NCBI RefSeq assembly: GCF_902652985.1
Contig: NC_047025.1
Coordinates: 16,988,001-17,052,000 of the forward strand
DNA length: 64,000 nt
Source of the DNA: Pecten maximus
Taxonomy: Eukaryota
Direction of reading: 5' to 3'
A model generated the notes under the pieces. The model was not told the DNA's origin and ran no database searches. It saw only the letters and a list, made by a program, of their open reading frames with translations. Position 1 is the stretch's first letter. Each line of letters begins with the position of its first letter. The translations under genes were made by a program, and so were the position numbers. Shown here piece after piece: positions 13,370-61,794 of the stretch.

Positions 13370-14450
13370 ACAATGCCACGACTGTGTAACGATACCCTGT
13401 TGTGATTTCAGCTTACAGTGCCAAGATTGTGATAGGGTATTATAGTGTGTTCCTGTACCCTGTCGTGATTTCTCCGTACAATGTTACGACTGTGTTGTAA
13501 TTTCTACGTACAATGTTACGACTGTGTTGTGATTTCTCCGTACAATGTTACGACTGTGTTGTAATTTCTACGTACAATGTTACGACTGTGTTGTGATTTC
13601 TACGTACAATGTTACGACTGTGTTGTAATTTCTCCGTACAATGTTACGACTGTGTCCCTGTACCTTGCTGTGATTTCTCCGTACAATGTTACGACTGTGT
13701 CCCTGTACCTTGTTGTAATTTCTCCGTACAATGTTACGACTGTGTTGTGATTTCTCCGTACAATGTTACGACTGTGTCCCTGTACCTTGCTGTGATTTCT
13801 CCGTACAATGTTACGACTGTGTTCCTGTACCCTGTTGTGATTTCTCCGTACAATGTTACGACTGTGTTCCTGTACCCTGTTGTGATTTCTCCGTACAATG
13901 TTACGACTGTGTTGTGATTTCTCCGTACAATGTTACGACTGTGTTGTAATTTCTCCGTACAATGTAACGACTGTGTTGTGATTTCTCCGTACAATGTAAC
14001 GACTGTGTTGTAATTTCTCCGTACAATGTTACGACTGTGTTCCTGTACCCTGTTGTGATTTCTACGTACAATGTAACGACTGTGTTGTGATTTCTCCGTA
14101 CAATGTTACGACTGTGTTGTAATTTCTCCGTACAATGTTACGACTGTGTTCCTGTACCCTGTTGTGATTTCTCCGTACAATGTTACGACTGTGTTGTGAT
14201 TTCTCCGTACAATGTTACGACTGTGTTGTAATTTCTCCGTACAATGTAACGACTGTGTTGTGATTTCTCCGTACAATGTAACGACTGTGTTGTGATTTCT
14301 CCGTACAATGTTACGACTGTGTTCCTGTACCCGGTTGTGATTTCTCCGTACAATGTTACGACTGTGTTGTGATTTCTCAGTACAATGTTACGACTGTGTT
14401 GTGATTTCTCCGTACAATATTACGACTGTGTTCCTGTACCCTAACGTGAT
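13370..14450. repeat. Composite minisatellite in aquaporin intron 1: 32-bp unit TGTGATTTCTCCGTACAATGTTACGACTGTGT and a 45-bp variant with added TCCTGTACCCTGT
   Basis: Both unit types read directly and interspersed; left edge is degenerate. Confidence 0.95.
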
Positions 14451-20109: not shown

Positions 20110-23100
20110 TAGTCGTTACCATGACCTGTCCTGATCTCTCAATGTTAGGAGTCGTTACCATGACCTGTCCTGATCTCCCAATGTTAGGAGTCGTTACCAT
20201 GACCTGTCCTGATCTACCAATGTTAGGAGTCGTTACCATGACCTGTCCTGATCTCCCAATGTTAGGAGTCGTTACCATGACCTGTCCTGATCTCCCAATG
20301 TTGGGGAGTCGTTACCATGACCTGTCCTGATCTCCCAATGTTAGGAGTCGTTACCATGACCTGTCCTGATCTCCCAATGTTAGGAGTCGTTACCATGACC
20401 TGTCCTGATCTCCCAATGTTAGGAGTCGTTACCATGACCTGTCCTGATCTCCCAATGTTAGGAGTCGTTACCATGACCTGTCCTGATCTCCCAATGTTAG
20501 GAGTCGTTACCATGACCTGTCCTGATCTCCCAATGTTAGGAGTCGTTACCATGACCTGTCCTGATCTCCCAATGTTAGGGAGTCGTTACCATGACTTGTC
20601 CTGATCTCTCAATGTTAGGAGTCGTTACCATGACATGTCCTGATCTCCCAATGTTGGGGAGTCGTTACCATGACCTGTCCTGATCTCCCAATGTTAGGAG
20701 TCGTTACCATGACCTGTCCTGATCTCCCAATGTTAGGAGTCGTTACCATGACCTGTCCTGATCTCCCAATGTTAGGAGTCGTTACCATGACCTGTCCTGA
20801 TCTCCCAATGTTAGGAATCGTTACCATGACCTGTCCTGATCTCCTAATGTTAGGAGTCGTTACCATGACCTGTCCTGATCTCCCAATGTTAGGAGTCGTT
20901 ACCATGACCTGTCCTGATCTTCCAATGTTAGGAGTCGTTACCATGACCTGTCCTGATCTCCCAATGTTAGGAGTCGTTACCATGACCTGTCCTGATCTCC
21001 CAATGTTAGGAGTCGTTACCATGACCTGTCCTGATCTCCCAATGTTAGGAGTCGTTACCATGACCTGTCCTGATCTCCCAATGTTAGGAGTCGTTACCAT
21101 GACCTGTCCTGATCTCCCAATGTTAGGAGTCGTTACCATGACCTGTCCTGATCTCCCAATGTTAGGGAGTCGTTACCATGACTTGTCCTGATCTCTCAAT
21201 GTTAGGAGTCGTTACCATGACATGTCCTGATCTCCCAATGTTGGGGAGTCGTTACCATGACCTGTCCTGATCTCCCAATGTTAGGAGTCGTTACCATGAC
21301 CTGTCCTGATCTCCCAATGTTAGGAGTCGTTACCATGACCTGTCCTGATCTCCCAATGTTAGGAGTCGTTACCATGACCTGTCCTGATCTCCCAATGTTA
21401 GGAGTCGTTACCATGACCTGTCCTGATCTCCTAATGTTAGGAGTCGTTACCATGACCTGTCCTGATCTCCCAATGTTAGGAGTCGTTACCATGACCTGTC
21501 CTGATCTTCCAATGTTAGGAGTCGTTACCATGACCTGTCCTGATCTCCCAATGTTAGGAGTCGTTACCATGACCTGTCCTGATCTCCCAATGTTAGGAGT
21601 CGTTACCATGACCTGTCCTGATCTCCCAATGTTAGGTGTCGTTACCATGACCTGTCCTGATCTCCCAATGTTAGGAGTCGTTACCATGACCTGTCCTGAT
21701 CTCCCAATGTTAGGAGTCGTTCCCATGACCTGTCCTGATCTCCCAATGTTAGGAGTCGTTACCATGACTTGTCCTGATCTCCCAATGTTAGGAGTCGTTA
21801 CCATGACCTGTCCTGATCTTCAATGTTAGGGAGTCGTTACCATGACCTGTCCTGATCTCCCAATGTTAGGGAGTCGTTACCATGACCTGTCCTGATCTCA
21901 TAATGTTAGGAGTCGTTACCATGACCTGTCCTGATCTCCCAATGTTGGGGAGTCGTTACCATGACCTGTCCTGATCTCCCAATGTTAGGAGTCGTTACCA
22001 TGACATGTCCTGATCTCCCAATGTTGGGGAGTCGTTACCATGACATGTCCTGATCTCCCAATGTTAGGAGTCGTTACCATGACCTGTCCTGATCTCCCAA
22101 TGTTAGGAGTCGTTGCCATGACCTGTCCTGATCTCCAAATGTTAGGGAGTCGTTACCATGACCTGTCCTGATCTCCCAATGTTAGGGAGTCGTTACCATG
22201 ACCTGTCCTGATCTCCCAATGTTAGGAGTCGTTACCATGACCTGTCCTGATCTACCATTGTTAGGGAGTCGTTACCATGACATGTCCTGATCTCCCAATG
22301 TTGGGGAGTCATTACCATGACCTGTCCTGATCTCCCAATGTTAGGGAGTCGTTACCATGACCTGTCCTGATCTTCAATGTTAGGAGTCGTTACCATGACC
22401 TGTCCTGATCTCCCAATGTTAGGAGTCGTTACCATGACCTGTCCTGATCTCCCAATGTTAGGAGTCGTTACCATGACCTGTCCTGATCTCCCAATGTTAG
22501 GGAGTCGTTAGCATGACCTGTCCTGATCTTCCAATGTTGAATAGTCGTTACCATGACCTGTCCTGATGTCCCAATGTTAGGAGTCGTTACCATGACCTGT
22601 CCTGATCTCCCAATGTTGGGGAGTCGTTACCATGACCTGTCCTGATTTCCCAATGTGGGAAGTCGTTACCATGACCTGTCCTGATCTCCCAATGTTAGGA
22701 GTCGTTACCATGACCTGTCCTGATCTCCCAATGTTGGGAAGTCGTTACCATGACCTGTCCTTATCTCCCAATATTAGGGAGTCGTTACCATGACCTGTCC
22801 TGATCTCCCAATGTTAGGAATCGTTACCATGACCTGTCCTGATCTCCCAATGTTGGAGAGTCGTTACCATGACCTGTCCTGATCTCCCAATGTTAGGGAG
22901 TCGTTACCATGACCTGTCCTGATCTCCCAATGTTAGGGAGTCGTTACCATGACCTGCCCTGATCTCCCAATATTAGGGAGTCGTTACCATGACCTGTCCT
23001 GATCTTCCAATGTTAGGGAGTCGTTACCATGACCTGTCCTGATCTCCCAATGTTAGGAGTCGTTACCATGACATGTCCTGATCTCCCAATGTTAGGAGTC

Positions 23101-25386
23101 GTTACCATGACATGTCCTGATCTCCCAATGTTAGGAGTCGTTACCATGACCTGTCCTGATCTCCCAATGTTAGGGGTCGTTACCATGACCTGTCCGGATC
23201 TCCCAATGTTAGGGAGTCGCTACCATGACCTGTCCTGATCTCCCAATGTTAGGAGTCGTTACCATGACCTGTCCTGATCTCCTAATGTTAGGAGTCGTTA
23301 CCATGACCTGTCCTGATCTCCCAATGTTAGGAGTCGTTACCATGACCTGTCCTGATCTCCCAATGTTGAATAGTCGTTACCATGACCTGTCCTGATCTCC
23401 CAATGTTAGGAGTCGTTACCATGACCTGTCCTGATCTCCCAATGTTGAATAGTCGTTACCATGACCTGTCCTGATCTCTCAATGTTAGGAGTCGTTACCA
23501 TGACCTGTCCTGATCTCCCAATGTTATGAGTCGTTACCATGACCTGTCCTGATCTCCCAATGTTAGGAGTCGTTACCATGACCTGTCCTGATCTCCCAAT
23601 GTTAGGAGTCGTTACCATGACCTGTCCTGATCTCCCAATATTAGGGAGTCGTTACCATGACCTGTCCTGATCTCTTAATGTTAGGAGTCGTTACCATGAC
23701 CTGTCCTGATCTCCTTATGTTAGGGAGTCGTTACCATGACCTGTCCTGATCTCCCAATGTTAGGGAGTCGTTACCATGACCTGTCCTGATCTCTTAATGT
23801 TAGGAGTCGTTACCATGACCTGTCCTGATCTCCCAATGTTAGGGAGTCGTTACCATGACCTGTCCTGATCTCCCAATGTTAGAGAGTCGTTACCATGACC
23901 TGTCCTGATCTCCCAATGTTAGGAGTCGTTACCATGACCTGTCCTGATCTCCCAATGTTGGGGAGTCGTTACCATGACCTGTCCTGATCTCCCAATGTTA
24001 GGAGTCGTTACCATGACCTGTCCTGATCTCCCAATGTTTGTGAGTCGTTACCATGACCTGTCCTGATCTCCCAATGTTAGGGAGTCGTTACCATGACCTG
24101 TCCTGATCTCCCAATGTTATGAGTCGTTACCATGACCTGTCCTGATCTCCCAATGTAAGGAGTCGTTACCATGACCTGTCCTGATCTCCCAATGTTAGGG
24201 AGTCGTTACCATGACCTGTCCTGATCTCCTAATGTTAGGGAGTCGTTACCATGACCTGTCCTGATCTCCCAATGTTAGGGAGTCGTTACCATGACCTGTC
24301 CTGATCTCTTAATGTTAGGAGTCGTTACCATGACCTGTCCTGATCTCCCAATGTTAGGGAGTCGTTACCATGACCTGTCCTGATCTCCCAATGTTAGGGA
24401 GTCGTTACCATGACCTGTCCTGATCTCCCAATGTTATGAGTCGTTACCATGACCTGTCCTGATCTCCCAATGTTTGTGAGTCGTTACCATGACCTGTCCT
24501 GATCTCCCAATGTTAGGGAGTCGTTACCATGACCTGTCCTGATCTCCCAATGTTATGAGTCGTTACCATGACCTGTCCTGATCTCCCAATGTTTGTGAGT
24601 CGTTACCATGACCTGTCCTGATCTCTCAATGTTAGGGAGTCGTTACCATGACCTGTCTTGATCTCCCAATGTTGGGGAGTCGTTACCATGACCTGCCCTG
24701 ATCTCCCAATATTAGGGAGTCGTTACCATGACCTGTCCTGATCTTCCAATGTTAGGGAGTCGTTACCATGACCTGTCCTGATCTCCCAATGTTAGGAGTC
24801 GTTACCATGACATGTCCTGATCTCCTTATGTTAGGGAGTCGTTACCATGACCTGTCCTGATCTCCCAATGTTAGGGAGTCGTTACCATGACCTGTCCTGA
24901 TCTCTTAATGTTAGGAGTCGTTACCATGACATGTCCTGATCTCCCAATGCTAGTAGTCGTTACCATGACCTGTCCTGATCTTCCAATGTTAGGGAGTCGT
25001 TACCATGACCTGTCCTAATCTCCTAATGTTAGGAGTCGTTACCATGACCTGTCCTAATCTCCTAATGTTAGGAGTCGTTACCATGACCTGTCCTGATCTC
25101 CCAATGTTAGGAGTCGTTACCATGACCTGTCCTGATCTCCTAATGTTAGGAGTCGTTACCATGACCTGTCCTGATCTCCCAATGTTAGGAGTCGTTACCA
25201 TGACCTGTCCTGATCTCCCAAAGTTAGGGAGTCGTTACCATGACCTGTCCTGATCTCCCAATGTTGGGGAGTCGTTACCATGACCTGTCCTGATCTCCCA
25301 ATGTTAGGAGTCGTTACCATGACCTGTCCTGATCTCCCAATGTTAGGGAGTTGTTACCATGACATGTCCTGATCTCCCAATGTTGG
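20110..25386. repeat. Large satellite array, 39/40-bp unit (GGAGTCGTTACCATGACCTGTCCTGATCTCCCAATGTTA), roughly 130+ copies
   Basis: Read directly; source of the MTCPDLPMLGVVT and MVTTPNIGRSGQV pseudo-ORFs. Confidence 0.99.
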
Positions 25387-25508: not shown

Positions 25509-25992
25509 CGAGGTCGAGTGTCTAGAGGGACACCACCAGGCAGTGCCACGTGAGGTCGAGTGTCTCGAGGGACACCACAAGACAGTGTCATGTGAGCTCG
25601 AGTGTCTAGAGGGACACCACCAGACAGTGTCACGTGAGGTCGAGTGTCTAGAGGGACACCACCAGGCAGTTTCACGTAATGTTGAGTGTCTAGAGGGACA
25701 CCACCAGACAGTGTCACGTGAGGTCGAGTGTCTAGAGGGACACCACCAGGCAGTGTCACGTGAGGTCGAGTGTCAAGAGAGACACCACCAGGCAGTGTCA
25801 TGGAGGTCGAGTGTCAAGAGAGACACCACCAGGCAGTGTCATGGAGGTCGAGTGTCTAGAGGGACACCACCAGGCAGTGTCATGGAGGTCGAGTGTCTAG
25901 AGGGACACCACCAGGCAGTGTCATGGAGGTCGAGTGTCTCGAGGGACACCACCAGGCAGTGTCGTGGAGATCGAGTGTCTAGAGGGACACCA
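25509..25992. repeat. Tandem minisatellite, 42-bp unit (GAGGTCGAGTGTCTAGAGGGACACCACCAGGCAGTGTCACGT) switching to a 40-bp variant, ~12 copies
   Basis: Read directly. Confidence 0.95.
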
Positions 25993-30246: not shown

Positions 30247-32784
30247 TCGGATGTCGTTTTTGCTTATGATGTAATATATTGATTTCTGCTAAATCTGGAC
30301 GAAACATTGCTCGTGCGTTTGAATTTATGTCCAAATTCACAGCCACTCAGTCTAGAGAAATTATTACGTTATATTTTTTTTTACATTACTGGGAAACTTC
30401 AGGTTGTTAACTAAGACACGCGAAAATGTGAAATATAAGGATACGACATTGTCTGTCGTTATCTAAATGTAATGATGAAATATATTCTGTTAAATTCAAA
30501 AGGATGTCTTTCGCAATTTATTCAATTCGTCTTAAAACTAACGTATTTCACCAGCTTGTGCAGTTTTACATGCATATGAATATTGATATCATACCGAACT
30601 TCGTTTTAAACAGGATTCTCACAGTATCTACACAGAAGCTTTATTTCATCATTCCATTAATTACAGATGTAAGACAAGATTGTGTTTACTGGTTTGGTCT
30701 CGTTATCAGATTACAATGTCGTATCAGGACCCGTGTGAACAGGATCCGCGACCAACACGGCGTATCTCACATGACCATCTGCTACTTAATTGTAGTAACC
30801 AGATGACCACTGACCAGCAGTGATTCGATGATTGCACGGTTCCATTTCTGATGATAGTCATTTAATTTATAATTAACTTTAGAACGAGCCGTATGTTATA
30901 CGGATTCGCCCCTGTTTGTGGTGATGATGTGATTCCTCAGTGACAATGGCATTATCGCGCTATGACAGGTCAAAATGTTTGATTGATTGACGGGTGCCAG
31001 TTTGATGCTTCCCCAACAGGTATGTTAATTTGACGATGGTTTCAATAGTTAACGGAGAAAACACCACAAGGGAAGATTAAAACAAAACATAGTGACGAAT
31101 ATGTACCGGGGAGTCGGGGTAGGGGTTGGGGGTTTGGATACAACGTTACGAATGAGGACGTCATTCTATGGAACATGTTGTATTCAATCGATAAAAACTA
31201 CATACATTAATTGGTATATGTTTACTCAATCTTTAAACTGTAGACCTCTAGGTAAAACCTTCATTATCACAGAACAGTTCATCAACACCTTCCGTCTTAT
31301 GGGTTTGTTTGAATATCGGCGCCCGATGACTTCGTACTTCATTAAGGATATTTGTCTGTGATATAGTATACAAAATATTCGTCCTTCTGGGACTCGTCCG
31401 TGAGAGTAGTCAATGAATCACCTCATACAGGTTTCTACGCTACTTGAATTTTAAAACTTTAAAACAAATACGTCCATCACTGTTCAATCCAATAAAAACC
31501 CAAATTGCCCCTCGATAATAGAAAAGACAAAACCAGCTAAATCCGGTTATCTAAAATGATGTCTTAGTGTTATAGATATAAACATGTGATTTATAACCCG
31601 CTATGATCCGGTCTGATTTATACCCGGTACTGACGTGTCTAGACGGACGTTTAACATTTCAAACAAACAAAATAAGTATTGATAAGTATCTTCGGTGACA
31701 TTTGATGCAAGTCTATTTATATATACCAATATCAGTTAACTGCAGCGAAACAGTGTTACAATAGGTATGTTTTGATAGTGTTTGACGAAATGTGTTCAGA
31801 CTTTATCAAACCGATCTCTAGACCCCTTAAAAAACACACCAGTCCGTCTATGAATGGAGCAAGTGTCATATCCGTATTTCGTATAGATACTGTCCATGTG
31901 TGGGTTAAATCTATAGATTAGTCCAACAATTGCCGAGTTGTGTGTTTATTAACGATTTCCTCACTTTCATACTGGGAACATCTTTTAGATTCTCCGGTCA
32001 CTCTCCTGAACCCAGCCAAGTAAACAGTAGGAGATGAATGGGAAAAAATGTAGACAGTGTTTACTAATGTAACGATAAGGTATACGATTATGTTAAATTA
32101 ATCTTATATATGTTTGAGACATTTGTTCGACAATCTATTGTCTTATTTGAATAAAATGAGTTAAAGGCATAGGATCTACGATAATTACTCACAAAGTCAT
32201 CGTATGTTTTAATTATTACCCGAGTGATCCGACTTTTCTTTGCTAAATATCGGTAGATAATTAATAATGTGTTGGCTGGAAACAGTCGTCAATATCTCCT
32301 TAATTACGATAACGACAATAAAAACAAAACAATGTCAGGTATTTTTTAAATTCATTTATTCACCTTGAGAGTTGTTTCCCTGAATACTGGACATATTTTC
32401 ACGTGGATATAGTAGATTTCATTATTTTAATACCGTTTCCGCGACCTCATTAAATGAAGGGCTTGGGTGGAAAGAGTCGTTATTTTAACAGTGTAGTTTC
32501 TACGGAGACACAATGATTAGGAACTGTTAAAACCAAGTCTCAGACTGAGACAATTCTGGTATATCCATCATTGTGTTTTATAACCCTGGTAGTAACATAC
32601 TGTATATTGTATAGTGTAGGACGTCTATCTTCTATCCTGGTGAGAGTCTGTGAAGGTTATAGCTTAGTTATGTATGTAAAGTTGGCTGGATCGTCATACT
32701 AACGTACTTTTGTATGAAGTTAACAGCACTACATTATATCTGTAAAATGTTCATAGCCTTGCATGTTTTGCAGACTCGGGTTTG

Positions 32785-38412: not shown

Positions 38413-40921
38413 ACGATTTCATTTTAAAGACGGAAAAATCAAAGGAAAGAAATATATTCGTCGAAAAAAGCGGGGTTGTCAGTAGCATTATGTTTAACGT
38501 CGTATTCTTATGACGTTCCGCTTGTCAACAAGACAGCGCCATTTTGAATGGACTGCGAAACGCAATTTCAGTGTTTTCTGCACTTTCCAGCACAGATAGT
38601 ATACAGTTGTATCGTTTCATCAGTAAAATATTCATAAGTAAAAGTGTTTAATCAGTAAACTAAAAGAATGTTGTTTGATATGTTAACTGTTTTTACGTGT
38701 GATATAAGTGTAAAGATGACCAGTAAACCATTCATGTATTGTCGTTAACAGTATATCTACGTATCAAAGCTATTATATATCATTAAAGATATGTAGATGT
38801 GTTCTCCATGTCGAACCTTTGGAATACAAAGGACATGACATGTTGTTATACAATCAAATTGTATTTTTTGCTTAGAGGGCAATGCTTTTACCATGTTATA
38901 TATCTGGGGAAACAATTCTGAACATAAAAATCGGCGATTTCTGCTTTTCTCGTAAAATTTGTTCTTACTCTGCCGCCGTCAGAGTAACCAGCTACTACAC
39001 GTGTAAATTCCATTGTTACGTTATACTACGGGGCGGCTCGGTACATACATGACAGGTATGTTTGTTATGTGAAACGTGTGAACATCGGCCCGCAAGCCCC
39101 GAGACAAGCTGGCAGGCCATGTCGCTAGTCCTTGTGCACGTCACAGCTGATTTACGTAATATGGCACACCAATGCAGATTTATGCAAATGATAAAGAAGG
39201 ATTAGTATCTACATCACAATGGAGTACCTGGCAACTCAATGAAGTACCTACAGACTTGTGGCGGCACTTCCGAATAGTCGGGGGACTCTGCGTGTGTTAC
39301 ACCAACACTGAACAGCAGCATATTTTTACTCAAAATCCCGAAACCGAGCCCTGTACATAAAAGCGAATATTTCTTAATTTAAGCTATTGTTTTATATATT
39401 AAAAAGTAATACAAGTTGTAGCAACTTAGATACGTCCTTTACTTCTATGAATTTGTACAATTTATTGACTGCATATATGATGAATATTGATATATTAATA
39501 ACTTTGACGTGTACAAGTGACAAAATACATTTCCCAAACCAGTACCAACAATTTGCATTATACCCCTTACTTTATTTTTTAAGCATATCAGATTTCTTAT
39601 TTTCTACAAAAAAAAAAAACAATCGTATGTGTGATATCATTGTATAGATATGATAGATATTGTAAAATGTCAAAGCTCCTCTAACCAACTTCAGACAATG
39701 GATTTCTTCGCATCATTCAGAGTCTCGCTAATACATATAATTTCCAAATTCTTTTCTAAATAATCCAACTGAGAATCACAACATGAGGAGCTTGGTCGCA
39801 TCAAAAAAGGTTTTAACATTTGAAATAATTTACTGAAAACGATTAGATTTTTTTATATATATTCTAGCACAACCAAACATACTGGATCATTACCTGTGTA
39901 CATTCAGATCCATGCCAATGTCATCTCTTTTCTGATTTTCTAACCAGAAATAGTACGTCAGTCAGTGAATTTGTTACATTTAAGAGGCTGGCGAAAATTG
40001 TCTTTCTAGTAACGGCTAGCAACTTTCAAAATAGTTACATTCAGGGTAAATATAAAACATGATATCCTTACAAAGTTCAATCAACTTTATTACAACCATT
40101 TGGTGAGTAGATCATATGAATAGTAATGATATTGCTATAAGTATACCAGAGTTTATTCGACTCCTTGTAAATGACAACACTGTGTATATCGTCAAGATTT
40201 CCAATGGTCGAATGAGTTTTATCGCTGAATCATAAATGAAAAGTTCCAAGTAAAATAACAGATGGCATTTACATAATTATTCATTTCCACCCATAAAACC
40301 GATTGTCTGTAACACATTTTACAGAAAACCGTTACATGATAGCCGATGTATATGGCGTTATTGCTGACAGGACGCCGCCGAGACCTGCTACAATTTGTGA
40401 TATTAGCTGATGACATTTCAACTCTTTCTGTATTATCTCCCAAACGCGCACGGGTCCTCAACACCTAGTTTGGTTTTAAAATGATACTTTTGTCAATACG
40501 TTTAACCCTGGGGATTCAACTGTGGATGGTGAACAGACACGACGTATTCATTACATTGGGGAAGTTCATGCGAAGCAGTCGTAATATAAAGGTTGTGTGT
40601 GATTGTGCGATGTCTACTGACCAAAACCAAACGAGTTCTTGATTCCATAAAATGTAGATATGAACGTCTTTGTAGTCTCAAATATAAAGGTTTGGCCCCC
40701 TAAAACAAATTATAAAGAGCCATTCCCTGTACCAATATGTTATGGCACAACTGTGTACAACACAAAATGCCAATGGCCTAATAAACTTATTTAAAAGTGA
40801 CTACATAAATATGCTTTAGAGTGACATGTCCATATACAATTTGTCTCTCTTTGGGGACAAGATATTTACACCTTTTCAATACGAATTGAGAGTTACAGTA
40901 GAGCCAGAATGGTTTCAACTG

Positions 40922-41211
40922 CATAATACGGCTGTTTGGTCCTTCTAGGACTCGTCAGTGATGTAAGGGACATCATACAGCTGTTTCGTCCTTCTAGGAC
41001 ACGTCAGTGATGTTAGGGACATCATGCAGTTGTTTCGTCCTTCTAGAACTCGTCAGTAATGTTAGGGACATCATACAGCTGTTTCGTCCTTCTAGGACTC
41101 GTCAGTGATATTAGGGACATCATACAGCTGTTTCGTCCTTGAAGGACTCGCCAGTGATACTAGAGACATCATACAGTTTTTTCGTCCTTCTAGGACTCGT
41201 CAGTGATGCTA
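40922..41211 (-). ncRNA. Tandem array of six 49-bp units, each a minimal hammerhead ribozyme motif; copy 41069-41117 has an intact core
   Basis: Minus-strand consensus ACATCA-CTGACGA-GTCC-TAGAA-GGAC-GAAAC-AGCT-GTA/TGATGT: CUGANGA and GAAA core, stem II GUCC/GGAC, GUA cleavage triplet, stem I ACAUCA/UGAUGU. Unit starts on the plus strand: 40922, 40971, 41020, 41069, 41118, 41167. Confidence 0.9.
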
Positions 41212-44200
41212 AAGTTTTAAAGTGTTGATATATAGAAGGCGGCGGAGAAACCAAAAAATGTCGAAAGAAAACTCAAAATATAGAGGGAGATGTAATAGCA
41301 CCATCATACAATGACAACAATGACAACAACAATTTATCAGCCACCACAGAAAGTCTTTACAGGGGAAGTACAAGTGACTGTGTTTTCGATCTCCTATGCA
41401 CTCTTCACAACTAAACATACCGTACAATGCGGTTGCGCTGGTCACATTCTAAGCCATTGTATACGCGGCCAATAGAGGGCCGGGTAACAGTTACGGGCGT
41501 TATGGGAACGGTTGGTGAGGCAGCCAGAAGTGTCAACATGACAAATGGCGTGATACGGAGACAGGGATGATCGGCCAAGTGCACGCTCGTGATATTTTAC
41601 AGATGGAATCTGACATTCAAGTTCTCGTTTCATTAAATAAATTAATTCATAAATTTCACAAGCAGGTTTTTCATTACACATTTTGACATTTTCATTTGAA
41701 AATTGAGGAAAATTTTCTATTGTGATGTGGACTACTTGTACCAGTATACAGATTTTAAGGCAAATTACACCGCCAAAATGTCCGGTTTTTCCCGAGGTCA
41801 ACTTTTTATATTTTCTTAAATTATGCTTAAAGATTGATATCCATATGAAATGATGGAACTAAATGCAATGTTAAGCTTGCTCCAGTCCACATACACTAAT
41901 ATAACCACGTGTTAAATATTATGACTTATTATTTATTGATGGTAATTAGGTAACCACCAAAACGTTGATAGTTCCTCAAATCTTTCGACAGGAATTGGGG
42001 TTCCAGGGACTTAAGGTTAAATCTTTGAAAAAACTCAACATTCAGAAAATATATTTTGTCATTGGTAATACCATTATTTCACTACCTTTACTAGATATAT
42101 CCAGTAACGATCAATTTGATTTTAGAACCAAATAAAGCAACAGCAATATCAAAAACATGATTTATTTAATTTGAGGTGTAGAGCACTTTTACCCGCGATT
42201 CTTGATCGATACCACTTACTGCCGAACAGGTTAACTTTCAATTACATGCATCCTAAAAAGAGGGATATACCGTCTTAAAAGCATTGCTGCGATTGGTGCT
42301 AACTGGTAGACCGGTGGCCATATCACACTGGATCGTCCTAACGGGATGGATATTTGATGTATATGATATGGCTTGAGGGTAAACTTCTCTCCTAAATGAG
42401 AATCGAGCTTGGTTTGTATTTCACAAAAGGTCGGGACATCATAATTGAGTATCATGAAAAAATGAAGTTCATGAAACAAGAGTCGGGAACAAAAGACGGC
42501 GTCCCTCCCTCATATAGAAGATATAATGACTCACATTCATTAGCGTTTGGAGATTCTCTTGATATGTGACGAAGCGACACAATATCCGCCAGCACAGTTT
42601 CAGCTCCTAAGGGAGTTGTTTGTTTTGGCAACACTCTAAATCCGGCATCAGTCACCACATTATAACTCTCCCGGTCGGTACACTCTGTTATTGTTTTTCC
42701 GTCTACTCATTGGGCCCTTTGTTCGTTTGGTTGTTTATTTTAAAACGCCCCATTCCTAAAGATGAATAATGATTTAAAGCTGATATCTTTTAAACAGACA
42801 GAAAATAAATAATGAAAGAGTAATCAGTGGGTTCCGTGTACTAGGAATAATCTTACTTTGAAGTTATGATTATTTAAGAAGCAAAACGACGGGAAAATGA
42901 CAGTGGTATGCTTTATTTTAAAACCAAAATTTAAAATTAAAACAAAATTAAAATAACATGATTCTAGAGCATCGGGCAATATTTGTATATATATATATAT
43001 TTTTTAGATCACGTTCTCTCAGAGTTTTTTTTCTAAACAAACGCATCTAGACATGTCTAGCACGCTTTAATCAAAGACCATTAATTACACATACACCATT
43101 CTAAGGTTCTAAAGCTTGAAAACATACACACATGGTACGGAGTGTAATGTCTTAATTAAAGATAATAGGTGTTTTTGAATTCAAAAACTTAAGTATCTTT
43201 AACTTGTTAATTAATGCTGAAGCGTAATATGTTTTACGAGAAAAACTTGTTTATCAGCTCCGCGAGATGGCCGTCCTTGAATATCATATTTACGATCTAC
43301 GATGATGGTCTTGCCAATAGCATTGTTAGTTTGAATAAAAAATATTCTTAATGTTAATGAAAGCAATGCTTTTACTTTGTAACAGAATTGGTATCAATGA
43401 TTTGACTAGTATGATCAACTTTCAATAACGGGTTTTATAGTCATACCTTATTATCGTACAATATGGCCACAAGTAAGCTTGATATTTTAATTTAACCAAC
43501 AAGATAACCATACGTTTTCCGGAATCATTTCACCAATATTAGCACCCACATTGGCACATAGGGAAAAGTTAAATGTTTAGATGCATAAAGCCGTGCATGA
43601 AGATCCTTATCCGCGAACACGCCTGTCATTCTTCTCCTCCCGATAAATCGCTACACTTGCTTCCTCTTCTGTCAGTTTAAAAAGCTCATAAAGTAGGGAT
43701 AATGCTGATGATAATCTGACATTGCGGTACAAAGTATCCATACGGTTTTGAGGAGTCTGAGCTGTCTTATAATGGCCGTTTCACATGTGCAGCTCATGAA
43801 ATATTACAAAAAGTCATAATTGCTACGATAAAATCGCGTATATACATGCTTTGGAAATAATTGGTCTTCATCAATTTCTCGTCAACACATCAATGCTTGT
43901 TTAAAGGATAAAAACATGGTGGTGTCTGAGAGAGATAATCACGTGTTTGGTAGTTTTATCGGTGCCTGCATGGAATCACCCGTCATATTGTGACCCCAGC
44001 TGAACACCAAAACAAAAAAGCCTTTAAATCATTGATACAGATTTAGTGCATCGCCATTTTATCATTTTCCATGCAGAATGTCCGAGTACCAAGACCTCGG
44101 GTCAAGAACTGCTTTGAGAAAAAACTGCCATGTGACAACCTTAAGATCTACGATTCGACGACGAACTAGTGAAGCGACAAAGTGAAATGTGTTATGCGAC

Positions 44201-44234
44201 GACAAATACACGATGCGACATCATAAAAGCGTGA

Positions 44235-45370
44235 CTTGACAACCTGATGAAGTCTGTGATGTGACAACCTTACGAAGTCTGTGATGTGACAACCTTATGA
44301 AGTCTGTGATGTGAAAACCTTATGAAGTCTGTGATGTGACAACCTTATGAAGTCATGTGACAACCTTATGAAGTCTGTGACGTGGCAACCTTATGAAGTC
44401 TGTGACGTGACAACCTTATGAAGTCTGTGACGTTAAAACGTTATGAAGTCTGTGATGTGACAACCTTATGAAGTCTGTGACGTGACAACCTTATGAAGTC
44501 TGTGACGTGGCAACCTTATGAAGTCTGTGATGTGACAACCTTATGAAGTCTGTGACGTTACAACCTTATGAAGTCTGTGACGTTACAACCTTATGAAGTC
44601 TGTGATGTGACAACCTTATGAAGTCTGTAACGTTACAACCTTATGAAGTCTGTGACGTTACAACCTTATGAAGTCTGTGATGTGACAACCTTATGAAGTC
44701 TGTGCCGTGACAACCTTATGAAGTCTGTGACGTGACAACCTTATGAAGTCTGTGACGTGACAACCTTATGAAGTCTGTGACGTGACAACCTTATGAAGTC
44801 TGTGATGTGACAACCTTATGAAGTCTGTGGTGCGACAACCTGATGAAGTCTGTGACGTGACAACCTTATGAAATCTGTGACAGAGGCAAATTCAACATAA
44901 GCGCTAGCGCGCTTCATGGAATTTGCCTCTGTCCAGTTGGCATTCATATTGACTATGAATGCCAACTGAAAGCCATTCAATGCTTAAAATATTTACCATT
45001 GTATGGCACTGCCACTATATAACCCTACCCAATTCAGTTGCGAGTTCACCAGCCTATGACACTGCCAACAGGAAGTGATCTCTGCTACTGGTAAGCGCGG
45101 GAAATTTGAATTTGAAAATTTCAAAACAAAAATCGCATGACAATAAAAAATCGCAGATGGTAAATATAAGAATTGAACGGCTTTCAGTTGGCATTCATAG
45201 TCAATATGAATGCCAACTGAAAGCCGTTCAATGCTTAAATGAAGTCTGTGATGTGGCAACCTTATGAAGTCTGTGATGTGGCAACCTTATGAAGTCTGTG
45301 ACGTGACAACCTTATGAAGTCTGTGATGTGACAACCTGATGAAGTCTGTGACGTGACAACGTTATGAAGA
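44235..45370. repeat. Tandem minisatellite, 25-bp unit (GTGACAACCTTATGAAGTCTGTGAY), interrupted at ~44880-45240
   Basis: Read directly; the array resumes after the insert. Confidence 0.95.
44879..45240. mobile_element. Palindrome-rich insert within the 25-bp array
   Basis: 15-bp hairpin 44879-44933; 15-bp hairpin 44934-44968; perfect 28-bp hairpin 45172-45232; direct repeat ending AAAGCCRTTCAATGCTTAAA near both ends. Confidence 0.75.
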
Positions 45371-48500: not shown

Positions 48501-48744
48501 TTCAATGTTTGATTCGCTGTATGCCATGTCTATTTAATTTGTCAAAGATTTTGAAATATAAAATTAAACACATCCCACTCTGACGCAAGAATAACTCATT
48601 GTAATAAATGTGCTGGCATCGAACTCTGACAGACGTTTGAATTCATTGTAATGCTGACACTTTCCTGACGAAAGCCACCCCAGCCTGACCCACGGTTTGT
48701 ACTCTATATTATTATGATTTTTATTATTCATTATTCTAGTACTC

Positions 48745-49570
48745 GGGCCCTTGTCTGCCACACGCTTGTATAAAATACTGGGACCCTGGTCTGACACACG
48801 CTTGTATAAAATACTGGGACCCTGGTCTGACACACGCTTGTATAAAATACTGGGACCCTGGTCTGACACACGCTTGTATAAAATACTGGGACCCTGGTCT
48901 GACACACGTTTGTATATAATACTGGGACCCTGGTCTGCCACACGCTTGTATAAAATACTGGGACCCTGGTCTGCCACACACTTGTATAAAATACTGGGAC
49001 CCAGGTGGGATACACGCTAGTATAAAAAAAGTAATACTGGCACCCAGGTCTGACACACGCTTGTATAAAATACTGGGACCCTGGTCTGCCACACACTTGT
49101 ATAAAATACTGGGACCCAGGTGGGATACACGCTAGTATAAAAAAAGTAATACAGGCACCCAGGTCTGACACACGCTTGTATAAAATACTGGGACCCTGGT
49201 CTGACACACGCTTGCATATAATACTGGGACCCAGGTCTGACACACGCTAGTATATAATACTGGGACCCAGATCTGACACGCTAGTATATAATACTGGGAC
49301 CCTGGTCTGACACACGCTTGTATATAATACTGGGACCCAGGTCTGACACACGCTAGTATATAATACTGGGACCCAGATCTGACACGTTTGTATATAATAC
49401 TGGGACCCAGGTCTGACACACGCTTGTATATAATACTGGGACCATGGTCTGACACACGCTAGTATATAATACTGGGACTCTGGTCTGACACACGCTTGTA
49501 TAAAATACTGGGGCCGGGTCTGACACACGCTAGTATATAATACTGGGACTCTGGTCTGACACACGCTTGA
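48745..49570. repeat. Tandem minisatellite, 36-bp unit (ACTGGGACCCTGGTCTGACACACGCTTGTATAAAAT), ~23 copies with length variants
   Basis: Read directly. Confidence 0.95.
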
Positions 49571-49574
49571 ATAG

Positions 49575-49937
49575 TAATATCCTTGTGTTTTACACCTATT
49601 GTACCAATTTGTGATCATATATAACATAGTAACACAATTGTCGAAGGAAGACAACTTGATGACTCGTGCCCTGACCGGGCCTCGAACTCACGATCTACGG
49701 CACCCAATCCCCTAGCCAGAAATACCATCAGCTTATATCGCTGCGTAGACTGGCCCCCTGTCTGTAGAATATTAAAATTATAAATAACATTGAGCTTTAT
49801 GATTTTGATTCCTAGGATATGTCTGATCCTATGTTTCAAACTAGGGGCAGATAATCTAGTATTATAATTTAGCTTGGCAATTCTAAACAAAACAACTGAG
49901 GGTCTGGTGGCCACTCTAATCTCTGCGCCACATCGTC
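49575..49937 (-). mobile_element. tRNA-derived SINE, interrupted in its A-box region by a MITE
   Basis: With the MITE and one TSD copy removed, the minus strand reads GATGTGGCGCAGCGATATAAGC (A-box-like) ... GTGAGTTCGAGGCCC (B-box-like, 49691-49677). Confidence 0.6.
49746..49918 (+). mobile_element. MITE copy 1 with TAGACTGGCC termini and 9-bp TSD
   Basis: TAGACTGGCC...GGCCACTCTA; flanks ATCGCTGCG (49737-49745) and ATCTCTGCG (49919-49927), 8/9 identical; reverse-complement match to 55695-55863. Confidence 0.85.
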
Positions 49938-53477: not shown

Positions 53478-54648
53478 TGTGGGAACCTCCTGTGGAAAAC
53501 TCCGATGGGAACCGCATGAAGGAGCCTCCTGTGGGAACCTACTGTGGGAACCACCTATGAGAACCTTCTGTGGGAACCTGCTGTGGGAACCTACTGTGGG
53601 AACCTACTGTGGGAGCCTACTGTGGGAACCTACTGTGGGAGCCTACTGTGGGAACCTACTGTGGGAACCTACTGTGGGAACCTACTGTGGGAACCTACTG
53701 TGGGAACCTACTGTGGGAGCCTACTGTGGGAACCTACTGTGGGAGCCTACTGTGGGAACCTACTGTGGGAACCTACTGTGGGAGCCTACTGTGGGAGCCT
53801 ACTGTGGGAACCTACTGTGGGAACCTACTGTGGGAACCTGCTGTGGGAACCTACTGTGGGAGCCTACTGTGGAAGCCTACTGTGGAAGCCTACTGTGGGA
53901 ACCTACTGTGGGAACCTACTGTGGGAGCCTACTGTGGGAACCTACTGTGGGAACCTACTGTGGGAGCCTTCTGTGGGGACCTACTGTGGGAACCTACTGT
54001 GGGAGCCTACTGTGGGAACCTACTGTGGGCAGGCTACTGTGGGAACCTACTGTGGGAGCCTACTGTGGGAGCCTACTGTGGGAACCTACTGTGGGAACCT
54101 ACTGTGGGAGCCTACTGTGGGAACCTACTGTGGGAACCTACTGTGGGAGCCTACTGTGGGAACCTACTGTGGGAACCTACTGTGGGAACCTACTGTGGGA
54201 ACCTACTGTGGGAGCCTACTGTGGGAACCTACTGTGGGAACCTACTGTGGGAACCTACTGTGGGAACCTACGGTGGGAGCCTACTGTGGGAGCCTACTGT
54301 GGGAGCCTACTGTGGGAACCTACTGTGAGAACCTACTGTGGGAGCCTACTGTGGGAGCCTACTGTGGGAGCCTACTGTGTAAACCTTCGGTGGGAGCCTA
54401 CTGTGGGAGCCTACTTTGGGAACCTACGGTGGGAGCCTACTGTGGGAACCTACTGTGGGAGCCTACTGTGAGAACCTACGGTGGGAGCCTACTGTGTAAA
54501 CCTTCGGTGGGAGCCTACTGTGGGAGCCTACTGTGGGAATCTCATGTGGGAACCTACTGTGGGAACCTACTGTGGGAACCTACTGTGACAGGCTACTGAG
54601 GGGACCTACTGTGGGAACCTACTGTGAGAACCTGCTGTGGGAACCTAT
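53478..54648. repeat. Tandem minisatellite, 13-bp unit TGTGGGARCCTAC, ~90 copies
   Basis: Read directly; source of the LLWEPTVGTYCGN pseudo-ORFs. Confidence 0.98.
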
Positions 54649-54827
54649 AGCAGAACAGGGAATTGATTTTGGTGTTTGGAGTTGCACCTATTGAAATTCT
54701 TTAGAAATACATCACTTTGGCCTCAGCGTCTCAGCGAAAGGAAGGTGATGGTTTCTGTCCCTTGAACCAGACAAACTGAATTTTATAATTTGGTAGCAAG
54801 TTGGTATTAAGGGATAGTTATCCCTTT

Positions 54828-55100
54828 GGCAGTACGACTATATCATGCTGCTATGTCCAGGTGTGTGACAGTATGACTATAACATGCTGATATATAAAGG
54901 TGTGTGGCAGTACGACTATATCATGCTGCTATGTCCAGGTGTGTGGCAGTACGACTATATCATGCTGCTATGTCCAGGTGTGTGACAGTACGACTATATC
55001 ATGCTGCTATGTCCAGGTGTGTGGCAGTACGACTATATCATGCTGCTATGTCCAGGTGTGTGGCAGTAAGGCTATATCATGCTGCTATGTCCAGGTGTGG
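54828..55100. repeat. Tandem repeat, 39-bp unit (GGCAGTACGACTATATCATGCTGCTATGTCCAGGTGTGT), ~7 copies
   Basis: Read directly. Confidence 0.92.
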
Positions 55101-60617: not shown

Positions 60618-61346
60618 CTGAAGGTTAACTAAGTCAAATGTGTTTGTGACTAACAAACTATAAAACGCTAGTGTACAAACCGAGTAGGTAGAGGTTTTAA
60701 CGGACCTTGCTGACGTAATAAGATGCCATACTACCAGATGACGTCTGTCAGCGCGTCACGTTGATGTGATGACAACTATGGTGGGAGTCAACGCCAATGT
60801 TTTCTTTCATGCAATTCACGTGCACCATGATACGCATTATCTTTGCTTAACACATTTCGTTAATGAAGAAACAATATGCCACACTGATTTTTTCACTTTT
60901 TTTCTAAAGCTCTGAGAACGGGGAAATCTGGTTGAAATTCTGCAAAGAACGTTCCTGTGTGAGATAAGATTGCGTCTATTTATGGCGTGGGCATTCGCCT
61001 CACATATTGTTACATTATTCAATTACGTTACTCAAAATGAACCTATTTCATTGGCTAAATTTATTATTGATATAGATAAGATATATAGATTGTAATTCAC
61101 AATACTGATGTCCATCCTGTTTTACCATGTATCATTGTTATCCATTTGTTCATGTTCATATTCTCTGCACTATACTGTTTATGAGAATAAACAATTGCCA
61201 TTGTCATTGTCGTGTTGTTTTAATGAAGTGAATGATGGGATAAGTCTTACTTCATACAGACACAATTATACATTACTGTTGTAAAAGACATATCAAACAA
61301 TTCTTAGTTCACATCGGCCTATATATTGTTATTTCAAAGCCTAGAT

Positions 61347-61672
61347 ATTGTTGTATTAAATGAAGTGAATGATCTTCTGATATCATACTGGACTATGTAT
61401 TGTTGTGTTAAAGGAAGTGAATGATCTTCTGTTATCATACTGGACTATATATTGTTGTATTAAATGAAGTGAATGATCTTCTGATATCATACTGGCCTAC
61501 AAATTGCTGTATTAAAGGAAGTGAATGATCTTCTGATATCATACTGGCCTATATATTGTTGTATTAAAGGAAGTGAATGATCTTCTAATATCATACTGGC
61601 CTATATATTGTTGTGTTAAAGGAAGTGAATGATCTTCTGTTATCATACTGGCCTATATATTGTTGTTATAAA
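61347..61672. repeat. Tandem repeat, 52-bp unit, ~6 copies
   Basis: GAAGTGAATGATCTTCTGATATCATACTGG recurs every 52 bp. Confidence 0.93.
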
Positions 61673-61794
61673 GGCATGATTTAGAAATAGGGTAACCCAG
61701 TTTTTTCTTTGGAATCCATGTTTGTATATTAGCTATGAAGTCTCAGTGTACCATTCTCTATTCAACAGCAATACGTAATAAATTGGCTTATCTC

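Follow-up and report, generated by a model that had tools for sequence, protein, structure and literature searches.

Canonical type I hammerhead ribozymes that lie in tandem repeats of animal genomes act and cleave as dimers (PMC4209133). Hammerhead satellites are known with units of 330-500 bp and retrozymes with lengths of 170-400 nt. The non-LTR retrozymes of the mussel Mytilus galloprovincialis have units of 350-390 bp (Cervera and de la Pena 2020, PMC7229834), and a survey of vertebrate retrozymes reported consensus lengths from 51 to 972 bp (Li, Clavereau and Pollet, bioRxiv 10.64898/2026.07.22.740005). Our literature searches found no paper that treats hammerheads in Pecten or scallops, bivalve minisatellites made of hammerheads, or arrays of the ribozyme alone within a longer retrozyme unit. 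Here we describe a hammerhead array of Pecten maximus in which the spacer between ribozymes is only 7 nt and the origin of the array can be traced. With a probability of about 0.65, it is a decayed instance of a structure found across the family: in many copies of a ~390-bp retrozyme-like repeat, the single hammerhead was multiplied in place to form a 49-bp minisatellite. The locus was first noticed in a preliminary description made from the sequence, whose background statement, that tandem repeats of animals can carry type I hammerheads in which helix III is short and palindromic, agrees with PMC4209133 and PMC7229834.

The minus strand of positions 40922-41209 of the window (the whole 64,000-nt stretch of DNA analysed) carries a hexamer of 49-bp units arranged head to tail, each composed of a 42-nt type I hammerhead and a 7-nt linker. 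Tandem Repeats Finder delimited the array at 40922-41208, with a period of 49, 5.9 copies, 89% matches, no indels and a score of 448; together with the minus-strand reading, this bears out the six-unit, 49-bp hammerhead array proposed in the preliminary description. The G+C content of the region is 38%. Each unit opens with helix I and CUGANGA, continues with a 4-bp helix II capped by a 5-nt loop, GAAA and C-AGCU-G, and closes with UA and the return strand of helix I. As read from the sequence, this architecture agrees with the definition of the canonical animal type I hammerhead in PMC4209133. With a 4-bp helix II and a 1-bp helix III bearing a 4-nt loop, the unit falls outside the definition of the minimal hammerheads of Penelope-like elements. 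The core CUGANGA...GAAA and an NUH cleavage triplet are present both in the family consensus and in unit 3 of the window. The units, numbered 5' to 3' on the minus strand, are as follows.

41161..41209, minus strand: unit 1; core intact; helix III segment with two changes (closing C to A, and G to A) and loss of the closing pair (from the sequence).
41112..41160, minus strand: unit 2; core CUGGCGA (A6 to G, predicted inactive); loop 2 altered; own GUA and helix III intact (from the sequence).
41063..41111, minus strand: unit 3; the sole fully intact type I hammerhead of the array (Hammerhead_1, 33.8 bits, cut-off 34, E 9e-8, scanned alone).
41014..41062, minus strand: unit 4; core intact; GCA in place of GUA; helix III CAACUG; one C-to-U change each in helices I and II, with a wobble pair kept (from the sequence; Hammerhead_1, 13.9 bits).
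40965..41013, minus strand: unit 5; core CUGACGU (A9 to U, predicted inactive); remainder intact (Hammerhead_1, 31.8 bits).
40922..40964, minus strand: unit 6, the last; CAAA for GAAA (G12 to C); helix III AGCC; helix I weakened (from the sequence; Hammerhead_1, 15.3 bits).

Five of the six units carry at least one change in the core, in helix III or in the cleavage triplet. The one copy previously called intact is unit 3 (41063-41111), and the defects listed at that time were all recovered; the unit descriptions above extend that list.

An Rfam scan had been proposed as a check. Applied to the whole 64,000-nt window at gathering scores it returned zero matches, and the motif became visible only in local scans. 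Matches were obtained in these local scans and in the wider family, and nothing in the window reached a gathering score. With Hammerhead_1 (RF00163, cut-off 34), consensus units elsewhere, from loci L002, L016, L035 and L039, exceed the cut-off at 35.8 bits, and window units score 33.8 bits at best, followed by 31.8, 15.3 and 13.9. The local scan also produced a Hammerhead_3 match that spans units 2 and 3.

At 31378-31409 on the minus strand, the window holds in addition a solitary degenerate hammerhead relic (nhmmer E 6e-5) with CGGACGA, a helix II that is kept, and GAAU. Searches with the nhmmer arm profiles described below found no recognisable arms around this relic.

The consensus 42-nt hammerhead occurs 214 times exactly in the Pecten maximus genome and 6,137 times with up to 3 mismatches, so that the family comprises at least 6,137 units at this threshold. 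The reversed pattern, used as a control in the same genome search, gave 0 occurrences, which excludes a chance origin of the motif. At first look a three-unit query returned 1,662 candidates and placed arrays on nearly every chromosome, and among the 50 loci retrieved array sizes ranged from 2 to more than 60 units with a spacing of nearly always 49. The array in the window is one worn member among hundreds of arrays of the 49-bp hammerhead unit.

Very long arrays lie on C6 near 21.852-21.866 Mb and on C9 near 42.256-42.258 Mb, where units identical to the consensus are spaced at 147 or 392 bp, hinting at higher-order repeats. Within the sampled arrays no higher-order repeats were detected: the likeness of units was independent of lag for lags 1-12. 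At L060 (reverse strand, ~930-1180) a G+C-rich insertion of ~250 bp splits a hammerhead unit inside an array; the insertion resembles a small-RNA-derived element, and a short stretch of the unit is repeated on both its sides.

Independent arrays have common flanking sequence on both sides. In profile searches the 5' arm ends exactly at helix I and the 3' arm begins right after helix I. The arms are dispersed repeats of 70-83% identity, with at least 105 candidate places for the 5' arm and at least 84 for the 3' arm. In the parent repeat, the ribozyme is preceded by the 5' arm of ~207 nt and followed by the 3' arm of ~88 nt and a linker of ~60 nt, which amounts to ~390 bp in total. Searching the genome by BLAST with the window's own flanks yielded short, weak matches only, and the arms were recovered through better-kept copies and profiles, the nhmmer profile of the 5' arm being built from the 5' arms of other element copies.

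41210..41314, minus strand: partial 5' arm, profile positions 100-207 of ~207, ending directly at the first unit (nhmmer, 41314-41165, E 7e-34).
40857..40921, minus strand: 3' arm, first 70 of ~88 positions, with the end of the arm missing or diverged (nhmmer with the 3' arm consensus, 40923-40857, E 7e-9).

Unit 6 joins the 3' arm directly, without a linker, as the hammerhead does in single-hammerhead copies. Judged by these alignments, the window array fills the exact position of the single hammerhead in a 5'-truncated or decayed copy of the element. The preliminary description had held that the ribozyme alone was amplified. That stands in so far as only the ribozyme module has been multiplied, and has to be amended in that the array lies inside a longer element, with an arm of that element on either side.

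Retrieval by the 3' arm alone gave 29 loci, of which 17 lacked a unit (up to 17 mismatches), 8 had one or two diverged units and 4 had arrays. In the alignment, many of the loci scored as lacking a unit still bear a degenerate single hammerhead at the expected place. Because loci found through the 3' arm mostly have single or relic hammerheads, one ribozyme per element is taken as the ancestral state. Conversely, at least 22 of 32 arrays ascertained via the hammerhead retain a recognisable arm, and about a third have none by the criterion used. As to the genome-wide comparison of arrays with single copies suggested at the outset, there are hundreds of arrays, and the single-hammerhead state predominates among loci reached via the 3' arm. 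Relative conservation of hammerhead and arms in dispersed copies was uninformative, as these copies were ascertained by the 3' arm and the 5' arm aligned poorly.

The parent itself can stand in tandem. L065:1136-1824 (minus strand) is a head-to-tail dimer of the parent unit with a period of 389 bp, in which the ~60-nt linker joins the two units and most of the hammerhead of the second unit is gone. L071 is a 1.5-mer of the parent in which the L065 linker recurs upstream of the element, and on C4 two 5' arms lie 1.37 kb apart. The tandem ~390-bp state was seen at two or three loci only, and most sampled copies are solitary. One old, decayed monomer (L065:1436-1824) folds at -79.8 kcal/mol with a z-score of -0.87, no better than its shuffles. 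Since the tandem state is rare and this old monomer does not rise above shuffles, we term the parent retrozyme-like and not a proven retrozyme.

The same observations bear on the proposal that the parent is some other short non-autonomous element, a SINE-, MITE- or Helitron-borne satellite with a chance hammerhead, whose arrays are ordinary internal tandem repeats. Short non-autonomous satellites of these kinds are common in bivalves. The mostly solitary copies with ends fairly constant near the last bases of the 3' arm, the few loci with tandem 389-bp units and the lack of unusual self-pairing in the old monomer would all suit such a parent. However, we noticed no terminal inverted repeats, poly(A) tail, tRNA-like head or target-site duplication, and the unit size, low G+C content, type I hammerhead with a weak helix III and tandem dimer fit published animal non-LTR retrozymes. 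Published retrozyme families also span all-monomer to all-tandem (bioRxiv 10.64898/2026.07.22.740005). On balance we regard a non-retrozyme parent as unlikely.

No notable ORF was found around the copies examined, no reverse transcriptase ORF near them, and no terminal repeats in the element alignments. Two further ideas about the parent were set aside. That the 5' arm is an ancient duplicate of the 3' arm was unconvincing, with an alignment score of 38 against 28.5 +/- 4.3 for shuffles, a value reached by 33 of 1000 of them. Two copies 6.3 kb apart on C5, considered as the ends of a Penelope-like element, were rejected as such and represent a segmental duplication with a common downstream ORF and no reverse transcriptase.

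We then considered how transcripts of the array would fold. In the energy model the 49-nt monomer adopts an alternative, non-hammerhead shape that pairs part of the core. The minimum-energy fold of a consensus dimer (L016:1695-1787) is a double hammerhead with -29 kcal/mol and a z-score of -3.5. An 8-bp helix III built from two palindromic segments is common to both hammerheads of this dimer, and in the inner hammerhead, which is of type III topology, the linker serves as loop 1. The Hammerhead_3 match in the window corresponds to the same arrangement: helix III is formed between the palindromic segments of units 2 and 3, the 7-nt linker closes helix I, and unit 3 supplies the core. Units 2 and 3 pair in the same way in the minimum-energy fold of 41020-41166. 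In minus-strand transcripts, neighbouring units would thus pair via the palindromic helix III into double hammerheads, each core of which would cut the GUA of its neighbour and release 49-nt RNAs. A lone unit would misfold and stay uncut. The predicted features in the window are as follows.

41076..41130, minus strand: cross-unit type III hammerhead reading (Hammerhead_3, 41.6 bits, cut-off 48.5, E 1e-7).
41122..41123, minus strand: strongest candidate for cleavage, 3' of the A in the GUA of unit 2, where the intact unit 3 core would cut (from the fold and the dimer rule of PMC4209133).
41073..41074, minus strand: conditional cleavage site at the GUA of unit 3, which would need either the unit 4 core with a mismatched helix III or unit 3 alone with a 1-bp helix III (from the sequence).
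40976/40975, minus strand: conditional cleavage site, which would be cut by the intact unit 4 core across an imperfect helix III.

According to the model, 41123/41122 would be the only site that faces a fully intact partner core. The remaining GUA positions of the array either face dead partner cores or have lost the U. The cuts after GUA previously assigned to 41074/41073 and 41123/41122 were correctly placed.

Predicted behaviour of this kind is also what would be expected if the 49-nt unit were a self-sufficient miniature retrozyme. Array transcripts would then process themselves to 49-nt RNAs carrying a 5'-OH and a cyclic phosphate, a tRNA ligase would circularise these RNAs, and a rolling reverse transcriptase would convert them into multimeric cDNA that is inserted at homologous element copies or elsewhere. 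The resulting circles, the smallest natural ribozyme-bearing ones, would seed and lengthen the arrays in place of DNA slippage. The unit does amount to one complete ribozyme, circularly permuted in the type III reading. The dimer is a predicted active double hammerhead and the monomer predicted inactive, the logic that protects monomeric circles in viroid-like RNAs (PMC4209133), and RtcB circularises retrozyme RNAs in vitro (PMC7229834). Against this, a 49-nt circle would be far smaller than any known retrozyme RNA (170-400 nt; PMC7229834).

Contigs of the satellite in RNA-Seq libraries also speak for an RNA-level route. In two libraries of the same species label, 64 and 99 assembled contigs fell on the array; as assembled contigs these conceal RNA ends, strand and circularity, and DNA carry-over may contribute to them. 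Some contigs join the hammerhead to sequence that reverse-complements to the 5' arm. Run X17, of a second species label, contained the satellite in very large amounts. The unique flanks of the window locus had no cover in the RNA library contigs. The hammerhead family is present in RNA libraries; self-cleavage at the window locus is a prediction from its sequence that presupposes transcription of the minus strand.

The patterns of divergence among units point to DNA. Units differ on average at 4.8 of 49 positions within arrays versus 7.3 of 49 between arrays, and in a few young arrays the within-array difference is 1.2 to 2.8. Core positions are as variable as the others (0.078 versus 0.081), and variability within the unit peaks, at 0.23, at the catalytic G12, which is part of a CpG. 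The helices pair in 82-96% of 628 units, which does not exceed the expectation for independent positions, with almost no compensatory pairs. Only one helix pair showed compensated doubles, 22 versus 6.5 expected. As the units are recent copies of each other, this covariation test has little power. Loops 1 and 2 are complementary in the consensus (CUA with UAG) and could kiss; no covariation was seen between them.

In a sister copy of the element, L064:1534-2013, part of the 3' arm forms a minisatellite of 11 copies of a 43-bp unit that contains no hammerhead and has a short direct repeat at its borders. About ten further minisatellites, whose units measure 13 to 52 bp and of which one extends over 5.3 kb, were found within the 64-kb window; expansion of short units is therefore common in the Pecten maximus genome. 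A search for target-site duplications flanking the hammerhead arrays found none, all long shared words being hammerhead remnants.

Short-unit tandem repeats are unusually abundant in this window. The longest, at 20111-25384, is a 5.3-kb minisatellite with a 39-bp unit, 134 copies and 94% matches, which brings the G+C content to 0.48 with a strong AT skew, and it is followed at 25510-25992 by an array of 11.6 copies of a 42-bp unit. Further minisatellites occupy 1-479, 2382-2786, 13461-14432, 44231-44881, 45239-45369, 48740-49579, 53478-54647, 54827-55099 and 61339-61674; the units of these arrays measure 28, 41, 32/77/109, 25, 36, 13, 39 and 52 bp.

Several of these results weigh on the miniature-retrozyme reading. 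Homogenisation within arrays, decay of the core CpG and the ribozyme-free 43-bp expansion at L064 are ordinary behaviour of satellite DNA, the arrays have no flanking target-site duplications, and those with arms occupy the single-copy site in exact register. In its favour, some arrays have no arms and start at varied unit phases, and expansions of the hammerhead are several times commoner than those of other parts of the element. Among loci found via an arm, hammerhead expansions outnumber the one arm expansion by ~4 to 1, an excess that could mean that an RNA-level route favours the ribozyme segment. Taken together, we consider it improbable, and somewhat more so than a non-retrozyme parent, that small circles of this kind seed and lengthen the arrays. 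The preliminary description had left open whether the repeat arose by local slippage or from a very small self-cleaving or circular RNA. Of these two origins, local DNA-level expansion fits the sequence data better, given the likeness of units within arrays, the variability of the core, the expansion at L064 and the other minisatellites.

Under local expansion of a retrozyme-like element, the multiplied segment would comprise the 42-nt ribozyme and 7 nt of its upstream flank. Unequal exchange or slippage would have multiplied this segment at the DNA level once the element had inserted, and the units would then have decayed neutrally. If more than one ribozyme of a parent RNA were active, the surplus 49-nt units would be cut out, and RNA-mediated copying should thus return the element to a single hammerhead. 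The prevalence of copies with one hammerhead is consistent with such a reset.

Neutral decay can be set against selection that would maintain the arrays for a use to the host or the element, perhaps in supplying small RNAs or in acting in cis as a processing cassette. In favour of selection, 214 units match exactly a consensus that is itself a perfect ribozyme, the satellite is abundant under the second species label of run X17 too, and competent units make up 31% versus 24% under a uniform-mutation null, a modest excess in which the relatedness of units is uncontrolled. However, core and non-core positions are equally variable and the key G12 is the most mutated base, no covariation was seen between the loops or, in a test of little power, in the helices, and five of the six units in the window are damaged. 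Selection for function is accordingly the least credible of the readings considered here, and we regard it as highly improbable.

In-place multiplication of the ribozyme alone leaves a path that is legible in the genome, leading from a 390-bp element with one ribozyme to the array. With adjacent ribozymes numbering from 1 to more than 60, the family offers a natural series in which to test how double hammerheads act in cis. It could reveal whether animals have very small self-cleaved RNAs or circles, and could show how fragments of transposable elements become satellites. For annotation, the thousands of ribozyme matches in the scallop are to be read as decaying satellite units and not as independent functional genes.

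How far the scallop family resembles described systems varies from case to case. Multimeric viroid-like RNAs (Forster et al. 1988, cited in PMC4209133) resemble it in having cleavable multimers, protected monomers and a helix III shared between two ribozymes, all of which are predicted for the scallop array. In contrast to these replicating RNAs, the scallop array is a repeat of genomic DNA, and its activity is a prediction of the folding model. The minimal hammerheads in the pseudo-LTRs of Penelope-like elements (PMC4209133) likewise need a second copy for helix III and are associated with a retroelement. They differ in being without helix III, with a helix II of 7-8 bp and a helix I of 4-5 bp, whereas the scallop hammerhead is canonical.

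Newt satellite 2, Schistosoma Sm-alpha and cave cricket pDo500 are, like the scallop array, satellite DNAs whose transcripts contain type I hammerheads that function best as dimers. Their units of ~330 to 500 bp hold one ribozyme and a long spacer, in contrast to the 7-nt spacer found here. Animal non-LTR retrozymes (PMC7229834) share with the scallop element a type I hammerhead with a 6-bp helix I, a 4-bp helix II and a 1-bp helix III with a palindromic loop, as well as low G+C content, lack of coding capacity, thousands of copies and a parent of ~389 bp able to stand in tandem. Unlike in these retrozymes, the ribozyme module alone has been multiplied inside the scallop unit, with a 49-bp period and non-repeated arms flanking it; most parent copies are solitary, and the scallop element is known from DNA and assembled contigs. 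In the shortest vertebrate retrozyme families (Li, Clavereau and Pollet), reported bioinformatically, the tandem unit similarly barely exceeds the hammerhead. Those families were described by length only and without nesting, whereas the scallop array is found in a mollusc, has a unit of 49 bp and can be traced to the longer element from which it arose.
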